A stretch of 64,000 bases of DNA from Camelus ferus. Lineage: Eukaryota. The notes beneath the pieces were generated by a model. It did not search any database. It was not told the DNA's origin and was given only the letters and a program-made list of their open reading frames with translations. Of this stretch, positions 8,775 to 55,925 are shown in pieces (the first letter of the stretch is position 1; every line of letters begins with the position of its first letter). Location of the stretch: contig NC_045705.1 of assembly GCF_009834535.1 (NCBI RefSeq), forward strand, positions 54,622,001-54,686,000, given 5' to 3'. Both the position numbers and the translations under genes were made by a program.

Positions 8775-9720
8775 TCACCACCCCAGAGAAAAGGACTTTC
8801 TTCCAGTTAGCCTCCTGAGAGCTCCTTTGACATCCTTGTTTCTCAGGCTATAAATTATGGGGTTCAACATTGGAGTCACTACTGTATAGAACACAGATAT
8901 CACCTTATCCTGCACTTTTGTGGTCTTGGAGTTTGGCCGCATGTAGGTGAATATTCCTGACCCATAAAAGAGGACAACAACAGTGAAATGGGAGCCACAG
9001 GTAGAGAAAGCCTTGAGCCTCCCCTCCCCAGACTGCATCCGGATCACAGTAGAGATGATATTCCAGTAGGAGACAAGAATCAGGGAGACAGGAGCTAAGA
9101 GGATGACCACACCCATTGCAAAGATGGCCATTTCTGTCCTGTGAGTATCTGCAGAAGCCAGCTTCAGGAGGGCAGGGAGTTCACAAAAGTAGTGATTGAT
9201 AATGTTCTGTCCTTGATAGGGAAGTTGGAAAGTAACGGTGGTATCTACCAGAGACACTAGTGCGCCACTGGCCCAGGACCCTAGGGCCAACTGAAGACAT
9301 ACCTGTTGGGTNNNNNNNNNNNNNNNNNNNNNNNNNNNNNNNNNNNNNNNNNNNNNNNNNNNNNNNNNNNNNNNNNNNNNNNNNNNNNNNNNNNNNNNNN
9401 NNNNNNNNNNNNNNNNNNNNNNNNNNNNNNNNNNNNNNNNNNNNNTAGTTTTCCTCTTTACCAGGAAGTGGACCAACACTTGCGGGACAATGCTAGTAGA
9501 GAAACAGAGATCTGTGAAAGATAGGTTTCTAAGAAAAAAGTACATGGGGGTGTGAAGTCGAGAATCCATGAAGATGAGAATGATGATGAACAGGTTTCCA
9601 AGCACCGTCAACAGATAAATGATGAGGAAAAGAATGAACAGCAGGATCTGGGTCTGCAAGTCCTGTGAAAGGCCGAGGAAGATAAACTCAGCCTACAAAG
9701 GTGTGGTTTTCTTCTCCCAT
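8775..9720 (-). pseudogene. OR2D3: Olfactory receptor OR2D3 ortholog with one +1 frameshift near codon 10 (possible sequence error) and a 133-N run over TM3
   Basis: ATG GGA GAA GAA AAC at 9720 (MGEEN) is 61 nt from the long frame, so off by +1 (GTAGGCTGAG vs GTAGCTGAG). The long frame has [18 protein letters not shown] and [15 protein letters not shown] and matches recalled human OR2D3. Removing one base gives 314 aa. Candidate acceptor CCTTTTGTTTGTGCCAG at 9744/9743. Confidence 0.85.
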
Positions 9721-20037: not shown

Positions 20038-20986
20038 ATGAGACAGACGAATCAGACACGGGTGACAGAGTTCCTCCTTCTGGGACTCTCTGATGACCAA
20101 CACACCCAGCAACTGCTCTTTATCTTATTCCTGGGTGTCTACCTGGTCACTGTACTTGGAAATCTGCTTCTCATATTCCTTGTTCATGTTGACTTCCAGC
20201 TTCACACACCTATGTATTTTTTCCTCTACAATTTATCTCTGGCTGACCTCTTTTTCTCTACCAACATCATTCCTCAGGCCCTAGTCCACCTGTTCTCTAG
20301 GAAGAAAGTCATTTCATTCACACGCTGTGCAATACAGCTTCTGCTCGTCCTCATTTTTGGGTGCACACAGTGTGCCCTTTTGGCAGTGATGTCCTATGAT
20401 CGGTACGTGGCTATCTGCAACCCTTTGCATTACCCCAGCATCATGACTTGGAGGGTGTGCATTCAGCTGGCCACAGGATCGTGGACCAGCGGCATTCTGG
20501 TATCTGTGGTGGACGCCACCTTCACACTGAGGCTACCCTACCGAGGCAGCAGTCACATTGCTCATTTCTTCTGTGAGGCCCCCGCACTGCTGATCCTGGC
20601 CTCCACAGACACCCGCACTTCAGAATTAGCCACTTTTCTTCATGGGAGTTGTGATTCTCCTCATCCCTGTTTCCTTAATTCTGGTCTCCTACGGCCGCAT
20701 CATCGTAACTGTGGTCAGGATGAAGTCAGCTGCAGGAAGGCTCAAGGCATTCTCAACCTGTGGCTCCCACCTCATTGTAGTCATCATTTTTTATGGGTCA
20801 GCAATTGTCACTTACATGACACCAAAGTCTTCCAAAGAACAGAAAGAGCTGGTATCTGTGTTCTACGCGATGGTGACCCCCATGCTTAATCCTGTCATCT
20901 ACAGTCTGAGAAACAAGGATGTGAGGGGAGCTCTGAGGAAAGTGGCCCCCAGGAACTTCCCATGCAGGCTTGGAATTTTCCACTGA
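20038..20986 (+). pseudogene. OR2D2: Olfactory receptor OR2D2 ortholog with one +1 frameshift at ~20633-20641 (possible sequence error)
   Basis: ORF 20038 ([12 protein letters not shown]...[10 protein letters not shown]...) continues in ORF 20642 (MGVVILLIP...KAFSTCGSH...PMLNP); both match recalled human OR2D2. Deleting one base (e.g. C20633 gives AIFFMGVV) yields 315 aa with no internal stop. Confidence 0.87.
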
Positions 20987-23611: not shown

Positions 23612-24556
23612 TCATCCTTTCTGAGGGCCCAGGGTCCGGCGGACGACCCGCCTCAGGGCAGCCTTGACTTCACTGTTCCTTAAGCTGTAGATGATGGGGT
23701 TCAACATGGGGGTCACCACCGTGTAGGAGAGAGACAACAGCTTCTTGCTTTCAGGAGAGGTGCTGGACCGGGGCCGGAAGTACGTGAGGATGGCAGTGCT
23801 GTAGAAGAGGGAGACGACCAAGAGGTGGGAGGAACAGGTGGAGAAGGCCTTGTGCTTCCCCTCGGCTGAGGGCATCCTGAAGATAGTGGAGAGGATGCGG
23901 ACATAGGACCCCAGGATCAACAAGAAAGGGAAGAGGATGAACAGGACGGTGGCTGTCAGAGCCTCCAGTTCAAACAGCGAGGTATCAGCACACACCAGTG
24001 CGATGACAGGGGGGCTGTCACAGAAGAAGTGGTTCACCCTGTTGGGGCCACAAAAGGGGAAGCTAAAAATCCATGTGGTTTGCACAATGGCCACCGGCAA
24101 CCCTGAGAACCAAGAGGCAGCTGCCAGCTGGCCACAGGCCCGGCGACCCATGATGACTGGGTAGCGCAGAGGGTCACAGATGGCCACATAGCGGTCATAG
24201 GCCATGGTGGCCAGGAGGCAGCACTCCGCAGCCCCGAAGAAGAAGAAGAAATACATCTGAGCAGCACAGCCGAGGAAGGAGATGGTCATGTCCTGGGCGA
24301 TCAGGGTCTCCAGCATCTTGGGCACAATGACCAAGTTGAAACCTATCTCCAGGAGAGACAAGTTCCTGAGGAAGAAGTACATGGGGCTTTGTAGGGCAGA
24401 GTCAGCTGTAGCGACCAGGATGATGAGGACATTGCCCATTAGGGTAACCAGGTAAATGGCCAGAAAAAGGAGAAACAACAGAACTCGTAGGTCAGAGGAC
24501 AGGGCTGAGAAGCTCACAAGAATGAACTCGCTGACAATTGTCCAGTTTCCCCACAT
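23612..24556 (-). CDS. OR10A4: Olfactory receptor OR10A4 ortholog, intact, 314 aa
   Basis: ATG at 24556 (MWGNWTIVSEF; the track start at 24586 is GTG). Has [28 protein letters not shown] and [12 protein letters not shown], and closely matches recalled human OR10A4. Candidate acceptor CTGCCCTCCCGCAG at 24592/24591. Confidence 0.93.
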   Translation of the reverse strand: MWGNWTIVSEFILVSFSALSSDLRVLLFLLFLAIYLVTLMGNVLIILVATADSALQSPMYFFLRNLSLLEIGFNLVIVPKMLETLIAQDMTISFLGCAAQMYFFFFFGAAECCLLATMAYDRYVAICDPLRYPVIMGRRACGQLAAASWFSGLPVAIVQTTWIFSFPFCGPNRVNHFFCDSPPVIALVCADTSLFELEALTATVLFILFPFLLILGSYVRILSTIFRMPSAEGKHKAFSTCSSHLLVVSLFYSTAILTYFRPRSSTSPESKKLLSLSYTVVTPMLNPIIYSLRNSEVKAALRRVVRRTLGPQKG

Positions 24557-25689
24557 CCTTCTTCTGCCCAGGATTTCACTGGGCACTCACGCTGCGGGAG
24601 GGCAGAAGCCCCATATGTTACGTAGACTTCTGTTACACCCTTCGCTAGGGGAGCTCCCCGGGGCCTCACTCTCCACCTTGCTTCTTACAGTTGTCAAGAC
24701 CAAGCAGCTATACTTTCCAAAATGTAAAAAACCAATCTGACAATGGGATTCCCATTTTTTGAAGAATGCTAAATTTTTTTTCAGACTGAACTGAGGCGCA
24801 CTGCATATGTCTATACGTGTCCTGACTTTCCTCTGCTCTAAAAGGATAGTCAGAGCCACGGCTTCATTTGTGGGCTTCTATCCTGTCTCTCTCAGTGGTG
24901 CTAAAAACGAAGTCAGGCCAGCATTTCTGAAGAGAGGGGTCTTAACACAAAAGGAGGATGATGAGGTGGGCCAGGGCATGCTTTCTGCAAAATGAAAGGG
25001 TGGGAAGGAAAACGTCAAAGAAACTGAACCAACGATTACCCAGGATCCCCAAAGAGGAGACATGAATGTGTCCCCCGGTCTGGAGCAGTGCATACTTGGG
25101 AAGATGTCAGTATATTGGAGAAATCTTCATTTCTAAACTCAGACGACTGCAGTTTAAACAAGAAGACACATAATGTAGAAACTGTGGTTTACCTTGATCT
25201 CTGGGCTAAATATTCTCCATGTGGCTGTATGTGGCCAGACAAAGGGACCGTGGACTCAAGACAGAGTCAGATCAAAGGGAGAATCTAGATGTCTCTTGTG
25301 TAAACCCTTTCATCAGCTCCAACTGTTTGACTTGTGTCTCGACTCTCAAGAAATACAAAACTCAGATTTTACGCATCAGCAAAGAACGACTCTGGTATGC
25401 AAGCATGTGACTAATAATATTAAATCCTGTGAAAAAGATTGAGAAGTTTTCATCATTGCATCAACAACAAAGCTTCAAAATTGGACGCTGAGAGTCCTTC
25501 TGATGACGATAAACTGAAGAAGAAAACCTAAATAACTTAGCATGGTGGCTGGTATATAATACGTGCTCAATAAATGCTAACCGATAGAATTATTATGACC
25601 TAATCCTAGATCTGCCTTCTAAAATCCACTTTTCTCACCCATCGCCCAGACTTACTGTAGCCCTTGCTTTTCAATCCCAAGGAAAAAAA

Positions 25690-36329: not shown

Positions 36330-37420
36330 GCTTAAAAGAACTAACACTGCCTCTACAGCAAAGGAACCCATAAACAAAATGAAAAGACAACCTATGGAAC
36401 AGGAGGAGATATTTACAAACAATGTGACCAACAAGGGATTACCTTCCAAAATATACAAACAGCTCAAAAAGCTCAATATCAACAAAACAAACAACCCAAT
36501 CAAAAAATGCGCAGAAGATTTAAATAGACAATTCTCCAACAGGCACACAGAAAGATGCTCAACAGCACTACTTATTCAAGAAATGCAGATCAAAACTACA
36601 ACGAGCAATGAGGTGTCACCTCACACCTCTCAGAATGGCCACCATCAAAAAGTGTACAAATAATAATTGTTGGAGAGGGTGTGGAGAAAAGGGAACCCTC
36701 CTACACTGTTGGTGGGAATGTAAATTGGTGAAGCCACTATGGAGAAGAGTATGGATCTTCCTTTAAAAACTAAAAATAGACTTATCGTATGATCCAACAA
36801 TCCCACTTTGGGGCATATGTCCAGAGAAAACTCTAATTCAAAAACAAACATGCACCCAAATGNNNNNNNNNNNNNNNNNNNNNNNNNNNNNNNNNNNNNN
36901 NNNNNNNNNNNNNNNNNNNNNNNNNNNNNNNNNNNNNNNNNNNNNNNNNNNNNNNNNNNNNNNNNNNNNNNNNNNNNNNNNNNNNNNNNNNNNNNNNNNN
37001 NNNNNNNNNNNNNNNNNNNNNGAACATGGGTGGACCTAGAGATTATCATACTAAGTCAAGTAGGTCAGACAGAGAAAGACAAATATATGACATCACTTAT
37101 ATGTGGAATCTTTAAAAAATCATACAAATGAACTTATTCACAAAGCAGAAATAGTCTCACAAACACAGAAACAAACTGTGCTTACCAAAGGGGAAAAGGG
37201 TAAGGAGGAGGGATAAATTAGGAGTTTGGGATTAAAAGATGAACACTACTATATATATAAAATAGATAACCAACAAGGTCCTACTGTATAGCACAGGGAA
37301 CTATACTGAATATTTTATAATTACCTATAATGGAAAAGAATCTGAAAAATAATAGATTTATATATATGTATAACTGAATCATTTTACTGTACACTTGAAG
37401 TATTATAAGTCAACTATACT
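36330..37420 (+). mobile_element. L1 ORF2 C-terminus and 3'UTR, degenerate, with N run 36863-37021
   Basis: [14 protein letters not shown]...IYKQLKKLN...[15 protein letters not shown], followed by 3'UTR motifs. Confidence 0.88.
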
Positions 37421-37910: not shown

Positions 37911-38866
37911 CTATGGGATGCAGTTTCTAAGGCTGAGGATTTTGCAGAAAGTCCGGCCAAGGGCATTCTTCACTTCATTATTTCTCAGGCTGTAGATGAT
38001 GGGGTTCAACATGGGAGTCACAACAGTGTAGGATAGTGACAGCACCTTCTTGCTCTCAGGAGAATTATTGGACTTGGGACGGAAGTAGGTGAGGCTTAGA
38101 GATACATAGAAAAGGGAGACAACAAGGAGGTGGGAGGAGCAGGTAGAGAAGGCTTTGTGCTTCCCTTTAGCTGAAGGAATCTTGAGGATGGCAGCAGCGA
38201 TGCGAGCGTAGGAACATAGGATCAGCAAGCAGGGTAGCATGACGACTAGAATGGTCCCAACTGATGGCATAGACCTCAAAGAGTGCTGTGTCTGCACAGA
38301 CCAGCCTGAGCACAGGTGGGCTGTCACAGAAGAAGTGGTTCACCTCGTTGGTGCCACAGAATGGAAAGCTGAAGAGCCACGTGGTCTGCACAGTAGCTAC
38401 AGGAACGCCTGGAAACCAGGAGGCAGCAGCCAGTTTGGCACACGTCCTTGTGCTCATGATGACTGGGTAGTGTAAGGGATCGCAGATGGCTACATAGCGG
38501 TCATACTGCCATGGTGGCCAGAAGGAAGCATTCAGAAACCCCGAAGAAGAAGAAGAAATACATCTGAGTGGCACAGCCAAGAAAGGAGATGGTCGTGTCC
38601 TGGGCAATCAGGGTTGCCAGCATCTTAGGCACAGCAACTAAGTTGAAGCCAATCTCCAAGAAGGACAAGTTCCTGAGGAAGAAGTACATGGGGCTGTGCA
38701 GCATGGGGTCAGCCCAGGTGACCAGAAGGATGAGGCCGTTTCCCATCAGGGTGACCAGGTAGATGATTAAAAATACCAGGAAGAGTAATGACTGTATTTC
38801 AGTAGGTAAGGAAGAGAAACTCATCAGGATAAACTCGCTAACTCTCGTCCAGTTGCCTCCAGCCAT
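37911..38866 (-). pseudogene. OR10A2: Olfactory receptor OR10A2-like with two +1 insertions (plus-strand C38506 and T38262; possible sequence errors)
   Basis: Three overlapping ORFs assemble into one OR. Alignment with the intact paralog at 51.7-52.7 kb shows the two extra bases; removing them gives 317 aa ending LRNCIP. Position next to OR10A4 and the SLSLTYF/RNNEV residues fit OR10A2 rather than OR10A5. Confidence 0.8.
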
Positions 38867-44990: not shown

Positions 44991-46124
44991 TTTCAGGATC
45001 TGGAGATTGTCTGGGAGCATGGTGCTAGATGCATGTTTTGACAGCTATGTAGACATGTCCTGGAGGCACCTGGAAACGGGGAGCTCACACTTCAGTGAGA
45101 GGTCAGGACTAGGCAAACCATTTGGGCATTCTGCATTCTTTTATTCATTTACTGAGTATCTGCTATATTCCAGGCACTGGACTAGACCTCAGAAATACAA
45201 ACATGAATGAAAAACTGTCCTTGCTGTGTCCTCAATGCCCCTGAGAAATACAACTGCAATGTCTTCAATGCTTAGTAATGCATGCAAGATGACACATGTG
45301 CCCAAGTTCACATGAGTGAACTTGGATTTCTTTAGAGGAATCAGGAAGAGACTGATAGAAAAGAAAACACTAGAGTTTAATCTTAAATGATATGCAGATG
45401 TTAACTTGGTATGGGGAGTCTGAGATGAGAGGCAGGAACTGTAAAGGGACGAACTGAGTAAAGATATAAAGATTTGATAATCATGTCTCTGTCTTGTTGA
45501 AGACTTACTCTGTTCCAGGTAGTTTTATTTAGAGAACAAAAATAACTGTATTAGTCCTTTCAATAATACCCCCAAAACAGTTCACTGTACATTCAGGAGG
45601 TCCTCCAAATACATAGGCTGGTCTTAAAATGTTTTCTCCTATGATCTCTTTGAAGCCTCTTGGCCTTCTATGTTACATATCAAACTTTCCTTTTCCTTCT
45701 AACTTCTTTATAGTTTGTGCCTTTGTATTTTATAGAATTCATGCTATATTGACAAGAACATGACATTTTAGACCACAGGGACCTAAGCTCTGATCACTGT
45801 TGGTTGTTCCTTTGTCCTGTTCTTTACATCCTGATAATACCTGTGAGGAGTAATTGAGGCTTTATATACAAAAAAGTAACTCATATCAAACAGCAAACAC
45901 ATGTTAATTCCTTTCTTTAGCCTGCTCTCTGGGAAAAGAAGGGAACCTAATAATTTATATACACGGTAATGAGTAGGAAACTAGTGAGAATCTGCACACC
46001 TGATATCCTACTTCAAATCGCAAGAATACTAAAGAACAGAGAGAATCGCAAAGTTGTACCAGGGGCAGTGGTTGCCCACATGGTGTCTCGGTTGTTGCCA
46101 CAGAATAATTGGCTTTAACACTTT

Positions 46125-46368
46125 AACATTTTTTTTTGCATTAGATGTTCCTTTTATTTTTTAACCTTTTTTATTGAGTTATAATCATTTTACAATGTTG
46201 TGTCAAATCCCAGTGTGGAGTACAATGTTTCAGTTATACATGAACATACACATATTCATTGTCACATCTTTTTCTCTGTGAGCTACCATAAGAGCTTATA
46301 TATATTTCCCTGTGCTATACAGTATAATCTTGTTTATTTATTCTACAATTTGAAATCCCAGTCTGTCC
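46125..46368 (-). mobile_element. L1 3' end with TSD and short extra 3' tail
   Basis: TTTATTGAGTTATAATCATTTTACAATGTTGTGTCAAAT...; TSD CTTTAACACTTT at 46113-46124 and 46369-46380. Confidence 0.8.
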
Positions 46369-47439
46369 CTTTAACACTTTCAACAGTCTGTTTCATTAAT
46401 ATAATGTCCTCCCTACATCAACTCTATGAGGTAGGTATTATCACCATCACAGATGAGGAAACTGAGAGAGAGAAATTTATGCATTAACTTGCATGGCTGG
46501 TAAATTGGAGACACAGGATTTGAACCCAGGTTTTTTAGAGGTTAAATTGTTGAGGGGAATAAAAGACTATGGTTAGAGAAACTAGAAAGGTATGGAGCAG
46601 GGGGAAAGAAAATAGTTCAGTCCAGTCCGGGCATGGCAAGAACTGAAAGGGACAGATAATCTAGAGCTGAGCTATGAGAGGGCTTGTATGACACACTGGC
46701 AATGTTAGTTTCATTCTAAAAATGGGGGTGAATTGTTGAGACTTTAAGTATGATAATGACAGATCATCACACGTGTATTTAGAAAGAACTATGCAGAGGG
46801 CGAGGAGGATGAATGAGAATGGGGTGTGTATGAACGTCTCAGTACAGCTGGAGGCTGGGAGACCAGTTAGGAGGCTCTATCAATAATCCCGGTGGGAGAT
46901 ACAAGCCAGCATCCAAGTTTCATCTCCACAGGGGTGATTCGTTGAAACCTTGGCACTAGAGGGGATTTCTGAGATGGTACCTGAGGAGGAGAGAAGAAGA
47001 GGACCAACTACTGAGTTCCCAGGACAAGTACAGTTTAAAAGGACTTAGAAAATAACACAAGGATCTACCCTTGGACATGCTGGGGGAATAGCAAGGAATC
47101 CATGACTACAGAAGGCAAGATGATAAAAACTTTCAGCAGCAAAATTCCTCTTACACAAGCATCAGAGAAAATCTGAAGGGCATTTGATTTCCTTAAGAAT
47201 CTCTCTGGACCAAGAGCTGGTCAAAGCCTTGCATCACTGGACTCTGTTGTAATTCCTCCCAGTCAAGGCCCTGGTCCTTCAAGATCTCAATCTGCAGAAT
47301 CACAGTCTCTGAGAGCTCGAAGGGCCCCCGAGACCCAAGAGTAAAAGCCTGGGAATCTCCGCTAAGGGGGTGAGGTCTCTCTCCCTCTCCTGCAGCTCTG
47401 CACAGGCTGAGCTCTGCCCTCACTGGCTTCCATCCTCAG

Positions 47440-47670
47440 TCTCTTCCACCCCTGGGCTTGCAGACGAACCAGCCTATAATGAGCAGTCAGAGGCTGTGAC
47501 CTCATTAAAAAGTTGTTAATGAGACACACTGCTGCTTAGGGAGCACAGCTGAGGGAGGCTCCCAGTGGCCTCTCGTGGGGCCTGGTGGGAGAGCTTGGGT
47601 GAGCAGGCAGGCCCAGCTCTGGGCAGAGGGCTAATGCACTCAGGCTGCAGAGCCACGCCTAATGAGCTCA
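47440..47670. promoter_or_regulatory. Candidate OR-cluster enhancer, probable ortholog of the mouse P element
   Basis: Exact TCATTAAAAAGTT (AACTTTTTAATGA on minus) at 47502-47514; TAATGA at 47477, 47517 and 47660 plus TCATTA at 47502; TAATGC at 47632; O/E core CCC-CT-GGG at 47449-47456; unique GC-rich island between OR10A2 and OR10A5. Confidence 0.75.
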
Positions 47671-48169
47671 TGCTGGCAGCAAGCAGGCCAGCTCGGAAGC
47701 TCAAGTCCCTGCTGACCTGCAGGCTTCGGGGAGTGGGTGTCATCCGGAGAAGCAGTGATCCTCTCTGAGCTCTCAGCTCTGCTTACTGCCTCCTCTGCGG
47801 ATCCAATTTTGATGGAGGACTCCAAATTGTGAGGTTACAAGATGGTTTTCCTTGCACTGAATTTTGGTCTTATGATCTCTTAATTGCCCAGTTACACAGG
47901 TCTTTTGAATGGCGTCTTTTTAGCCTGTGTCCTCTTGCCACATCATACCACTCCCCAAGTAATGTTTACAAACTACAGATTTGATTGTTTCTTCATGCTA
48001 AAAACCCTTCAGTTAATCTATACAGTTCACAAAATAGTGTTCAAACCCCTTGGCCTAGAAGGCCTTTCTAGATTTGACTCGTTCCTACCTCCCCACCCTT
48101 ATTCCCTCCAGTTTTCCTTCCATATCATACTTTTTATTTTTCTCACCATCAGCATCAACATCACCACCA

Positions 48170-48420
48170 CTGCCACCAGCATCCGTATAATGCTTACGTT
48201 TTCTATTGAAGTTGCCATGGGCCCAGCCTTGTTCCTTAGTGACTTACATATATTCACTCATTTAATCCTCTCCACCAAGATGTGAAATAGGTGTTATGAT
48301 TATCTTCACTTTACAGAAGAGGAAATATAGGCACAGAGTTGCTAAATAACTTTCTCAGTGTCACAGAGCTATCAAGGGACAGAAGCAGGACAAAGCCCAG
48401 GCTTTTTAGCTTCAGAGTTC
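48170..48420 (-). mobile_element. MIR
   Basis: CTCATTTAATCCTC...CACTTTACAGAAGAGGAAA...GGCACAGAG...GTCACAGAGCTA. Confidence 0.7.
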
Positions 48421-48429
48421 ATGCTCTGA

Positions 48430-50000
48430 CCCAGGTGTAGGCAAATGACCATCTACAGGACAAATTCAACCTTCCACCCATCTCTGTATAATTCATGTGT
48501 TCAGAATGGTTTTTACATTTTTTTCAGTGCTTAAAAAAAGCAAAAGAAGAGTAATATTCCTTGACATATGAAAATCATATGAAATTCAGATTCCACTATC
48601 TGGAAATAAAGTTCTGTTGGCACATGGCCATGCTCATTCACTTAAACGTCGTGGCTACTTTCATGCTGCAACAGCAAAGCTGAACACTTGTATGAAGTTC
48701 ATACATTAGTGGTACTTTCGTCTGCTGCTTGGGGCATTAAAATTCATCGTGATGCCCAAGGACAAAATTGTAATCATGTGAGGTGATGTATGCTTCCTAA
48801 GCTTACTGTGGTAATCATATTGTTATACATACATGTGTCAGCTCATTATGCTATACACCTTAAACTGGTACAATGTTATATCAGTTATATCTCAGTAAAA
48901 CTGAAAAAAAGTTTTCATGAGCCAGAGCAGGTGAACATAGGAGAGAAATTGTCACAATTTAAGCAGTGAGTATTTGTGTAGCTGTTGTCAAGTTATAAGA
49001 GTATGTTCATGGCCCTGTCTACTGTGTAGAGTGAATTACTCTTGCAAAAAATAAATATTAACAAGCTTTTAAAAAAGCATAGTGAAGCAGTTATTACTTA
49101 ACAGCATCTTGAGTGCCTTGTGCATCTCTGTACTGCAACATTTTATTTACTTATTTTGTTGCCAGTGCATATCCATCAAGTCAAAATGAGAAAAAAAATT
49201 GACATCAAATATCACATTTTAAAGAACAGTGGAGTGTAGAATATTCTGATATCAAATTAGATGGTAAATCATTGTTTATAATGCAATGCTATTCACGCTA
49301 TGCCAAAATTATATATTATATGTAGACATCACTAGACTAATTCCTCATTCCTATATTTCCAACTCACAGGAAGCAACAGTCAGAGAAATCTAAAAATTGA
49401 ATGGAATATCTCATTACAGCAGAATGTCTTTCCCATCTATCCTTCAATAGAAAATGATTCATCTTCAGAGGGCAGGGCATAGCTCAGTGGTAGAGCACAT
49501 GCTTAGCATGCATGAGGTCCTGGGTTCAATCCCCAGTACCTCCATTAAAAAGAAAAAAAACAACTAATTACCACCCCCCAAAAAATAAAATGATCTTATG
49601 CCATAAATGACATGCTAAAAACAAATTTCAGGAGGACAATCTATTGGAATGTATAAACATATTCCAAAAAATGAATATGCTATATAAAAATTATATAACT
49701 GTGGGTGATAACAGTATTTGACAACATGTAATTGTACAAAAAGACGTTTTTGAAGATGCAAGATGTAAAATCTCCTTGTAGATTAGCCTTGACATGTAAA
49801 CACTTGCAACTGATTTTGAATCTCAATTAAATGAAATATTATTCCCCTAAAAAGGAATTCCATTCTTCTCATTAGTAGACCTGTATTATAAAAAATTATA
49901 TTGTAAATATCACCAATAAAATTATGAAAACTTTTCTCTTTGTTATATAATTATCTATAAAATTTCCTTGATTTTGCGTCTTGGCCTACAAAGCTTATTT
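48430..50000 (+). mobile_element. Fragmented hAT-Charlie (MER58/Cheshire-like) element interrupted by L1 and SINE pieces
   Basis: 5' CAGGTGTAGGCAAAT...GCCATGCTCATTCACTTA...GGCTACTTTCATGCT; 3' ATTCTTCTCATTAGTAGACCTGTATT...TTTTGCGTCTTGGCCTACAAAGC. Confidence 0.55.
49470..49590 (+). mobile_element. Vic-1-like SINE, young and very tRNA-Ala(AGC)-like
   Basis: GGGCAGGGCATAGCTCAGTGGTAGAGCACATGCTTAGCATGCATGAGGTCCTGGGTTCAATCCCCAGTACCTCCA plus the same CTAATTACC..CCCC tail as the copy at 14.8 kb. Confidence 0.88.
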
Positions 50001-51733: not shown

Positions 51734-52711
51734 TTAGTTGTGCCTCAAAATAGCTGTAGAATTTCTGTAGTTTCTGCCCCCTAAAACCTTGTAGAAGGTC
51801 CGGCTGAGGGCATTCTTCACTTCATAATTTCTCAGGCTGTAGATGATGGGGTTCAACATGGGAGTCACAACGGTGTAGGATAGTGACAGCACCTTCTTGC
51901 TCTCAGGAGAATTATTGGACTTGGGACGGAAGTAGGTGAGGCTTGAAGATACATAGAAAAGGGAGACAACAAGGAGGTGGGAGGAGCAGGTAGAGAAGGC
52001 TTTGTGCTTCCCTTTAGCTGAAGGAATCTTGAGGATGGCAGCAGCGATGCGAGTGTAGGAACATAGGATCAGCAAGCAGGGTAGCATGACGACTAGAATG
52101 GTCCCAACGATGGCATAGACCTCAAAGAGTGCTGTGTCTGCACAGACCAGCCTGAGCACAGGTGGGCTGTCACAGAAGAAGTGGTTCACCTCGTTGGTGC
52201 CACAGAATGGAAAGCTGAAGAGCCACGTGGTCTGCACAGTAGCTACAGGAACGCCTGGAAACCAGGAGGCAGCAGCCAGTTTGGCACATGTCCTTGTGCT
52301 CATGATGACTGGGTAGTGTAAGGGATTGCAGATGGCTACATAGCGGTCATATGCCATGGTGGCCAGAAGGAAGCATTCAGAAACCCCGAAGAAGAAGAAG
52401 AAATACATCTGAGTGGCACAGCCAAGAAAGGAGATGATCGTGTCCTGGGCAATCAGGGTCCCCAGCATCTTGGGCACAATGACTAGGTTGAAGCCAATCT
52501 CCAAGAAGGACAAGTTCCTGAGGAAGAAGTACATGGGGCTGTGCAGCATGGGGTCAGCCCAGGTGACCAGAAGGATGAGGCCGTTTCCCATCAGGGTGAC
52601 CAGGTAGATGATTAAAAATACCAGGAAGAGTAATGACTGTATTTCAGTAGGTAAGGAAGAGAAACTCATCAGGGTAAACTCGCTAACTCTCGTCCAGTTG
52701 CCTCCAGCCAT
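51734..52711 (-). CDS. OR10A5: Olfactory receptor OR10A5-like, intact, 325 aa with altered C-terminus
   Basis: ATG at 52711 (MAGGNWT; the track start at 52759 is TTG). All OR motifs present; SSSLTYF and RTF.KVL residues and position fit OR10A5. Candidate acceptor TTTCGTCTCTTTCCCTGACACTCAG at 52800/52799. Confidence 0.88.
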   Translation of the reverse strand: MAGGNWTRVSEFTLMSFSSLPTEIQSLLFLVFLIIYLVTLMGNGLILLVTWADPMLHSPMYFFLRNLSFLEIGFNLVIVPKMLGTLIAQDTIISFLGCATQMYFFFFFGVSECFLLATMAYDRYVAICNPLHYPVIMSTRTCAKLAAASWFPGVPVATVQTTWLFSFPFCGTNEVNHFFCDSPPVLRLVCADTALFEVYAIVGTILVVMLPCLLILCSYTRIAAAILKIPSAKGKHKAFSTCSSHLLVVSLFYVSSSLTYFRPKSNNSPESKKVLSLSYTVVTPMLNPIIYSLRNYEVKNALSRTFYKVLGGRNYRNSTAILRHN

Positions 52712-54199: not shown

Positions 54200-55925
54200 T
54201 TCAGACAGGAAACAAATATAACTAAAGAAGCAAAACCACACGTTACAATCAAAAGAACTTCCAGGCTGCCTACAAAAAACCACAAGAATTTTATCTTACA
54301 CCANNNNNNNNNNNNNNNNNNNNNNNNNNNNNNNNNNNNNNNNNNNNNNNNNNNNNNNNNNNNNNNNNNNNNNNNNNNNNNNNNNNNNNNNNNNNNNNNN
54401 NNNNNNNNNNNNNNNNNNNNNNNNNNNNNNNNNNNNNNNNNNNNNNNNNNNNNNNAAAAATAAACAAGTGGACTCCATTAAACTGAAAAGCTTCTGCACA
54501 GCAAAGGAAACAATCAACAAAATGAAAAGGCAACCTACCAAATGGGAAAATATGTTTGCAAACTGTATATCTGATAAAGGGTTAATATCCAAACTATATG
54601 AGAAATTCATATAACTCAGTAGGAAAATAATAATAAAAGTAAAAATGAAAAAAGAATCTGATTGAAAAATGAACAGAAGGCCTTAATAGACATTTTTCTA
54701 AAGATGGCATACAAATGGCCAACAGATACACACAAAGGTGCTCAACGTCACTAGTCAACAGGGAAATGCACATCAAAACTCCAGTGAGATCTCGCCTTAA
54801 AGAAATGGCTATCATCAAAAAGACAAAGATTATATAAAATAGATAAACAGGTTTATACTGTATAGTACAGGTATATTCGATATCTTGTAGTAACCTATAC
54901 TGAAAAAGAATATATGTATGTATATGGATGACTGAAACATTATTCTGTACCAGAAGCTGATGCAACATTGTAAACTGACTATACTTCAAAACAAAAACAA
55001 AAATATTGCTTTATAGTTAACAGGAAAGAAAAAAATCACATACAACTTGAAATTCTAAAAAAAGATAAGCGATAACAAGTGTTGGGGAAGATGTGGAGAA
55101 AGGAGAACTTTNNNNNNNNNNNNNNNNNNNNNNNNNNNNNNNNNNNNNNNNNNNNNNNNNNNNNNNNNNNNNNNNNNNNNNNNNNNNNNNNNNNNNNNNN
55201 NNNNNNNNNNNNNNNNNNNNNNNNNNNNNNNNNNNNNNNNNNNNNNNNNACTATCTCAGNNNNNNNNNNNNNNNNNNNNNNNNNNNNNNNNNNNNNNNNN
55301 NNNNNNNNNNNNNNNNNNNNNNNNNNNNNNNNNNNNNNNNNNNNNNNNNNNNNNNNNNNNNNNNNNNNNNNNNNNNNNNNNNNNNNNNNNNNNNNNNNNN
55401 NNNNNNNATTATTTAGCCATTAAAAAGAAAGAAATCTTGCCATTTTTGACAGACAAAATTAATTGAGCTTGAGGATCTCATGCTAAATGAAATAAGTCAA
55501 AGAACAAACAAATACTGTATTATCTCACTTATATATGGACTCTAAGAAAGCTGAACTCAAAGAAACAGAGAGTAGAATGATGACTGCCAGGGACTGGGGG
55601 CTAGGGGAAAGGGAGGAAATGTTGGTCAAGATCTACGAACTTCCAGTAATAGGATGAGTAAGTTCTGGGGCTCTAATATACAGCAGTGGTGACTATAATT
55701 AAACATATTGTATTATATACTTGCTAGTTGCTAAAAGAGAGTAGATCTTAAGTGTTCTCCATATATGCACACACAAAAGGTAGTTATGTGAGGTGATGGA
55801 TGTGTTAACTAACTTTTTTTTGTGGCAATTATTTTGCAACGTATATGTGTATCAAATCATCACATTGTACACCTCAAACTTACACAATATTAAATGTCAG
55901 TTATATCTCAATAAAGTTGGGAGAA
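54200..55925 (+). mobile_element. L1 ORF2 3' end and 3'UTR (L1MA-like) with a younger L1 3' fragment nested at ~54830-54990 and three N runs
   Basis: AAACTGAAAAGCTTCTGCACAGCAAAGGAAACAATCAACAAAATGAAAAGGCAACCTAC...; 3'UTR ending ATATCTCAATAAAG. Confidence 0.85.

Follow-up and report, generated by a model that had tools for sequence, protein, structure and literature searches.

A probable camel ortholog of the mouse P olfactory receptor enhancer downstream of OR10A5

The DNA analysed here is a 64-kb window, a stretch of 64,000 nucleotides of the Camelus ferus contig NC_045705.1, in which olfactory receptor (OR) genes lie on either side of a GC-rich intergenic element. The OR10A5 coding exon, upstream of the element, is intact on the minus strand (51734..52711) and is 100% identical to 'olfactory receptor 10A5 [Camelus dromedarius]'. 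Downstream of the element the gene in the OR10A2 position (37911..38866, minus strand) is 95.6% identical to the OR10A5 coding sequence and is split into three open reading frame (ORF) pieces in three reading frames. Single-base (+1) insertions of G at 38506 and of A at 38262, together with the loss of 4 nt near 37920, make it a pseudogene in this assembly, either through recent loss or through an assembly error. A 13-mer motif within the element is 4220 bp from the OR10A5 stop codon (51734-47514) and 8636 bp from the ATG of the downstream gene (47502-38866). The initial annotation had placed the element between OR10A5 and OR10A2 at 4.2 and 8.6 kb; these distances stand, while the frameshifts of the downstream gene had gone unnoticed.

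The camel gene order is OR10A5, the OR10A2 pseudogene, an intact OR10A-like gene (23612-24586) and genes that we putatively label OR2D-like from a reading of their translations. This matches the mouse order Olfr2-Olfr713-Olfr714-Olfr17-Olfr715. An ORF at 20038-20889 on the plus strand encodes an OR-like N-terminal two-thirds followed by an unrelated tail, and is therefore probably frameshifted, while a further OR ORF at 8775-9659 on the minus strand is broken by a run of N. The window contains five such runs (9312-9445, 36863-37021, 54304-54455, 55112-55249 and 55260-55407), the last three of which (54304-55407) are situated 1.5-2.7 kb upstream of the OR10A5 ATG.

The element consists of a conserved core (47424..47583, minus strand), recognised as the peak of three-way identity between camel, pig and manatee, enclosed by an island (47150..47900, minus strand) delimited by GC and copy-number analysis. 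The GC content of the island is 52-60%, compared to 28-45% in its flanks, and 46350-48490 has no second copy in the window while the repeats on both sides do, so that its initial description as a non-repeat, GC-rich island is borne out. A wider stretch, 47778-46480, is collinear with the promoter region of mouse Olfr713 (P3). OR10A5 and the OR10A2-position gene are tandem duplicates whose similarity reaches upstream, with 42695-41395 matching 60749-59504 at 85% and 44982-44011 matching 62856-61861 at 65%. The first of these blocks, of approximately 1.3 kb, is also conserved (75-78%) upstream of the horse, dog and sheep OR10A genes, and since it is both conserved across species and duplicated upstream of OR10A5 it is a candidate proximal promoter, or possibly a 5′ exon. 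We searched the 64-kb window for a second copy of the island, as the promoter copy belonging to OR10A5, and did not find one; extrapolating from the duplication geometry of the upstream blocks, such a copy would sit near 65.4 kb (~65,400), just past the end of the window.

Mouse P is a class II OR choice enhancer on chromosome 7, in the P2/Olfr17 cluster (Bozza 2009; Khan 2011; cited via PMC5638857, PMC12547500 and PMC8213819). It controls 10 of the 24 genes of its cluster. In camel, each of its three homeodomain sites has a positional counterpart, as does the O/E-like site. Two of the homeodomain cores, TCATTA (47502-07) and TAATGA (47517-22), face opposite ways inside a 30-mer (47494..47523) that is identical to rat P, and correspond to the published P sites ‘P2’ and ‘P1’ respectively. 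The third, TAATGA at 47477..47482 on the plus strand, lies inside the block TAATGAGCAGTCA, which is common to camel, pig and mouse P and from which manatee differs by one base and the P3 promoter by three; the camel site has a 1-nt deletion just outside the core. The three cores (47477, 47502(-) and 47517), each aligned to a P site, span no more than 46 bp. The initial annotation had reported several TAATGA sites and a CCC-NN-GGG core, and we find four of the former, at 47477-82(+), 47502-07(-), 47517-22(+) and 47660-65(+), together with a single CCCNNGGG core at 47449-56. Four TAATGA sites per 300 bp is the maximum for the window and is reached by only 0.16% of 300-bp windows.

The O/E-like core CCCCTGGG (47449..47456) lies at the homologous place to the O/E site published for P, the sequence being GTCTGCAGCCCCAGAG in P and GTCTGCAAGCCCAGGGG in camel. 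Against the strict O/E-like pattern YYYCARRRR camel scores 8/9 and pig 9/9, and the manatee site has a 1-nt insertion. Upstream of the core, the minus strand of 47590-47700 contains two further homeodomain-type sites: a TCATTA at 47660-65 that is kept in camel and manatee and not in pig, and a second whose sequence is TCATTA in pig and manatee and GCATTA in camel. Camel and pig share the block GGCCACTGGGAG (47559-47570), which is also conserved, save for its last base, in the mouse P3 promoter; manatee differs at the first base.

The 13-mer itself, AACTTTTTAATGA, is an extended homeodomain site that occurs as an exact match on the minus strand at plus-strand positions 47502..47514 and has no other exact copy in the 64-kb window. 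The surrounding minus strand reads CATTAAC-AACTTTTTAATGA-GGTCACAG, which confirms the H/P 13-mer and the flanks that had been read at first sight. The initial annotation had also stated that this motif is shared by mouse H, P and the P3 promoter and raises the probability of OR choice. The literature agrees on both points, describing AACTTTTTAATGA as an extended homeodomain site common to H, P and the Olfr713/P3 promoter, tandem repeats of which boost transgene expression (PMC7804114, PMC5638857, PMC6744719). In the sequences compared here the 13-mer is exact in camel, pig, mouse P, rat P and the mouse P3 promoter, while the manatee counterpart, GTCTTTTTAATGA, has two mismatches. In dinucleotide-preserving shuffles the exact 13-mer appeared on average 0.01 times per window (1 of 100 shuffles with a match), in agreement with the rough figure of ~0.01 proposed initially. 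When one mismatch is allowed the expectation rises to 0.5, with a match in 39 of 100 shuffles, and the weight of the 13-mer therefore rests on the exact match only.

Full-length mouse P is 319 bp. The mouse P used for comparison comprises 95 nt of the core, reconstructed from the overlapping motif sites that the supplement of PMC6744719 lists, and the rat P and P3-promoter sites, of 44 nt each, come from the same supplement. Over the 30-mer at 47494-47523 camel matches rat P at 30/30 positions, the mouse P3 promoter at 29/30 and mouse P at 28/30. Over the 95-nt core the camel sequence is 76.8% identical to mouse P and 64.2% identical to the paralogous P3 promoter. There are 29 columns that discriminate mouse P from the P3 promoter, at which camel has the P state in 16 and the P3-promoter state in 4, with corresponding ratios of 15:3 in pig and 15:5 in manatee. 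A six-sequence alignment gives the same picture, with camel, pig and manatee siding with P where P and the P3 promoter differ; examples of P-type versus P3-type states are GTC versus GAC, GTGACTGCTCATTAAT versus GTAACTGTCCATTAGT and TAGTCTGCAG versus TAGACTGAAG. Stretches of 4 nt and 7 nt that are absent from the P3 promoter are present in P, camel, pig and manatee.

P has been described as ‘remarkably similar’ to the nearby P3 promoter (PMC7804114, PMC5638857, PMC6744719). In both Mus musculus and M. caroli the sole copy within the 10-kb flanks is found 5.1 kb upstream of the Olfr713 ATG, and is therefore the P3 promoter. Camel is 67% identical to this mouse promoter over 375 bp, with 24 nt of contiguous identity around the 13-mer, and sensitive settings extend the collinearity to ~1.15 kb (64-67%). 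Similarity to mouse P and P3 thus reaches well beyond the 13-mer, as had been anticipated, covering the 95-nt core of P at 76.8% and 375-1150 bp of the P3 promoter. A P-type copy was sought in the mouse Olfr713 and Olfr714 loci with their 10-kb flanks, where only the P3-promoter copy was found; mouse P is likely to lie in the 16.7 kb between the Olfr713 and Olfr714 flanks, at GRCm39 chr7:106,646,317-106,663,037. Measured against the camel/pig/manatee consensus, there are 4 core changes in P alone, 16 in the P3 promoter alone and 6 common to both mouse copies. The 4 P-only against 16 P3-only changes point to mouse P as the slow, ancestral-like copy and to the P3 promoter as the derived one, and the six shared rodent-derived states set beside the 16 P3-only changes are compatible with an ancient duplication, a duplication in the rodent lineage or gene conversion.

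To place the element among mammals, OR10A5-type loci with 10-kb flanks were compared from mouse, pig, manatee, dog, sheep, squirrel and horse. In pig the element has an exact 13-mer and is found 6.3-7.6 kb downstream of OR10A5, and in manatee, a member of the Afrotheria, it is 5.3-7.3 kb downstream of an OR10A gene (L014:17175-17400). Together with the 4.2 kb of camel these are matching relative positions within collinear intergenic DNA. Nearly all the unique intergenic DNA is collinear, at 72-76% in pig and 66-74% in manatee, and since the background is collinear throughout, alignability alone is no sign of constraint. In 60-bp windows the three-way identity has a mean of 0.55 and climbs to 0.75-0.82 at the core, and the five best 100-bp windows of the 8 kb of collinear intergenic DNA all fall in 47583-47444. 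These best windows reach 0.78-0.79 against a mean of 0.45 (z about 1.9), while other local peaks reach 0.65-0.74. The core is the identity maximum of the interval, by a modest margin over other peaks. The second-highest peak of camel/pig/manatee identity (0.74), at 45334-45433, has neither a homeodomain nor an O/E motif.

In the one sheep OR10A interval examined the element is absent, with camel 50569-45419 replaced by 834 bp of unrelated DNA of 30% GC (L011:12116-12949). Copies of the 42695-41640 block lie on either side of the sheep OR10A gene, an arrangement suggestive of a rearranged tandem array. No copy of the island was found within 10 kb on each side of the gene at two dog loci and one squirrel locus. 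The horse flanks are collinear and stop ~1-2 kb short of the expected position of the element, and horse is therefore uninformative on its presence or absence. Conservation across placentals, as the initial annotation had expected it, thus holds for pig and manatee, with a local peak, and does not hold for the one sheep interval, while none was found in dog and squirrel.

Three other explanations of the element can be weighed against this evidence. That the 13-mer is a chance match within unrelated GC-rich DNA has almost no probability. One-mismatch matches do arise in 39/100 shuffles, and a scan of metagenome contigs with a shared 21-mer returned one match, which was AT-rich, unrelated and due to chance; but the expectation for an exact match is 0.01, and homology to P, the P3 promoter, pig and manatee spans hundreds of bases. 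These alignments refute a chance origin of the 13-mer. An explanation with more in its favour, which we nevertheless judge unlikely, is that the island serves chiefly as promoter and first non-coding exon for the OR10A2-position gene, as its paralog does for mouse Olfr713/P3, rather than as a cluster-wide enhancer. The ~1.15 kb of collinearity with the mouse P3 promoter region extends beyond the motif core, relative to the downstream gene the 13-mer points the same way as in mouse, and a distance of 8.6 kb is compatible with OR genes having upstream non-coding exons. OR promoters are mostly TATA-less, so that a missing TATA box is compatible with promoter identity. In the mouse P3 promoter, however, a TATAAAAA box is found about 200 bp 3′ of the 13-mer, and at the homologous place camel, pig and manatee lack TATAAAAA despite conservation of the neighbouring bases across all five sequences; its absence fits an enhancer-type copy. 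Moreover, at discriminating positions the element tracks P and not the P3 promoter, the block at 42695-41395 is an alternative promoter candidate nearer to the gene, and conservation still peaks at the core even with the camel gene reduced to a pseudogene. On balance the island is probably more than just the OR10A2 promoter, and a dual enhancer/promoter role is compatible with the evidence.

The condition of the downstream gene raises another question, which is whether the element is a true P ortholog that no longer works in camel and is decaying as a relic beside a dead gene. The two frameshifts of that gene, the O/E-like site one base off the strict consensus and the 1-nt deletion just outside one homeodomain core would all fit such decay, and the absence of the element from the sheep interval indicates that its loss is tolerated in some lineages. 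Against this, camel keeps the exact 13-mer and an unbroken set of three homeodomain cores, and its 30-mer is still identical to that of rat P across a separation of at least some 90 million years. The element could also still be needed by OR10A5 and by another intact OR10A gene in the vicinity. We regard decay into a relic as improbable.

We consider it probable that the core at ~47424-47583, in the island 47150-47900, is the camel ortholog of mouse P, a class II OR choice enhancer made up of three homeodomain sites, among them the extended 13-mer, and a neighbouring O/E-like site. On sequence grounds, orthology to P taken by itself appears highly likely, and the initial reading of the element as a camelid ortholog of P is upheld at this level; an enhancer function in camel is plausible by analogy with mouse. 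The orthology draws on the exact 13-mer, the 30/30 match to rat P, the majority of P states, the site counterparts, the position and the identity peak, and the match of the camel gene order to Olfr713-Olfr714-Olfr17 was also counted in favour. Counted against it were the modest height of the conservation peak, the 8/9 match to the O/E pattern, the downstream pseudogene, the weak Lhx2/Ebf/Ldb1 ChIP signal of mouse P itself, the limit of the comparison to 95 nt of mouse P, the absence from the one sheep interval and the failure to find a copy near the dog and squirrel genes examined. The orthology is thus supported by sequence, by a relative position shared among three placental orders and by a local peak of conservation. 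On the basis of mouse genetics and of the motifs present it can be proposed that, in immature olfactory neurons, an Lhx2-type homeodomain factor and O/E (Ebf) factors would bind the predicted sites, and that this binding would raise, in cis, the choice probability of neighbouring OR promoters of the OR10A/OR2D cluster. The element lies in the upstream portion of the duplication unit that contains OR10A2 and is paralogous to the mouse P3 (Olfr713) promoter, and through this paralogy it may also serve as a promoter for the downstream gene.

A broader and more tentative possibility is that the P-type module was the ancestral upstream element of the OR10A5/OR10A2 unit, predating the placental radiation because it is present in Afrotheria, Laurasiatheria and rodents, that mouse P has kept the ancestral sequence, and that the P3 promoter, a derived copy, has evolved fast and acquired a TATA box. 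If this were true, the pair would offer a natural example of a single module used as an enhancer in one copy and as a promoter in the other, the persistence of the element next to a dead gene in camel would argue for a role across the cluster, and the loss in sheep would be a natural knockout.

The element is what would be expected of an ortholog of the known P enhancer and involves no new mechanism. To our knowledge, only a few OR choice enhancers have been validated by deletion in mouse, P among them. The survival of the core, nearly unchanged, in camel, pig and manatee marks the constrained bases as the homeodomain sites, the 13-mer and the O/E-like site, and the ancestral sequence would be carried by the P-type copy and not by the P3 promoter. 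Sheep, where the element is missing from the interval examined, and manatee, in which the 13-mer is altered, are natural variants for probing the contribution of the motif. For annotation, the analysis marks a putative regulatory element that is invisible to gene models, as had been proposed at the outset.

Among known systems, the Greek Islands resemble the camel element in being intergenic elements of OR clusters with homeodomain and O/E motifs. They are co-bound by Lhx2, Ebf and Ldb1 and share a composite motif in which a homeodomain site is within 3 bp of an O/E site. In the camel core the O/E site is ~20 bp from the nearest homeodomain core, and there is therefore no composite motif. In the 2017 Greek Island study a cluster fitting that of P (mm10 chr7:106.64-107.17 Mb, 25 ORs) is listed without an island, and in a 2021 paper mouse P showed no strong enrichment for Lhx2, Ebf1 or Ldb1 in bulk mature neurons. 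The mouse H element and the x21 and 19-mer multimer enhancers have the extended homeodomain 13-mer in common with camel; multimers of this site raise the probability of OR choice. H itself is on another chromosome next to a different cluster, and camel has no homology to it outside the motif (H ACATAACTTTTTAATGAGTCT; camel TAACAACTTTTTAATGAGGTC).

The mouse Olfr713 (P3) promoter is a closer relative, with ~1.15 kb of collinear sequence, the same 13-mer and 24 nt of contiguous identity. Unlike the camel element, it is upstream of the first gene of the pair and not between the genes, has 16 unique core changes (P has 4) and a TATAAAAA box, and lacks the 4-nt and 7-nt stretches. Relative to mouse P, in a comparison that spans 95 nt of P, the camel element differs in having an O/E-like site one base off, a 1-nt deletion beside the third homeodomain core and a pseudogene as its downstream neighbour. 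Its similarities to mouse P are a 13-mer without mismatch, a set of three homeodomain sites that agree in order and orientation, a corresponding placement of the O/E-like site, 77% identity across the 95-nt core, the P state at most of the positions that discriminate P from the P3 promoter, and its location within a syntenic OR10A cluster.
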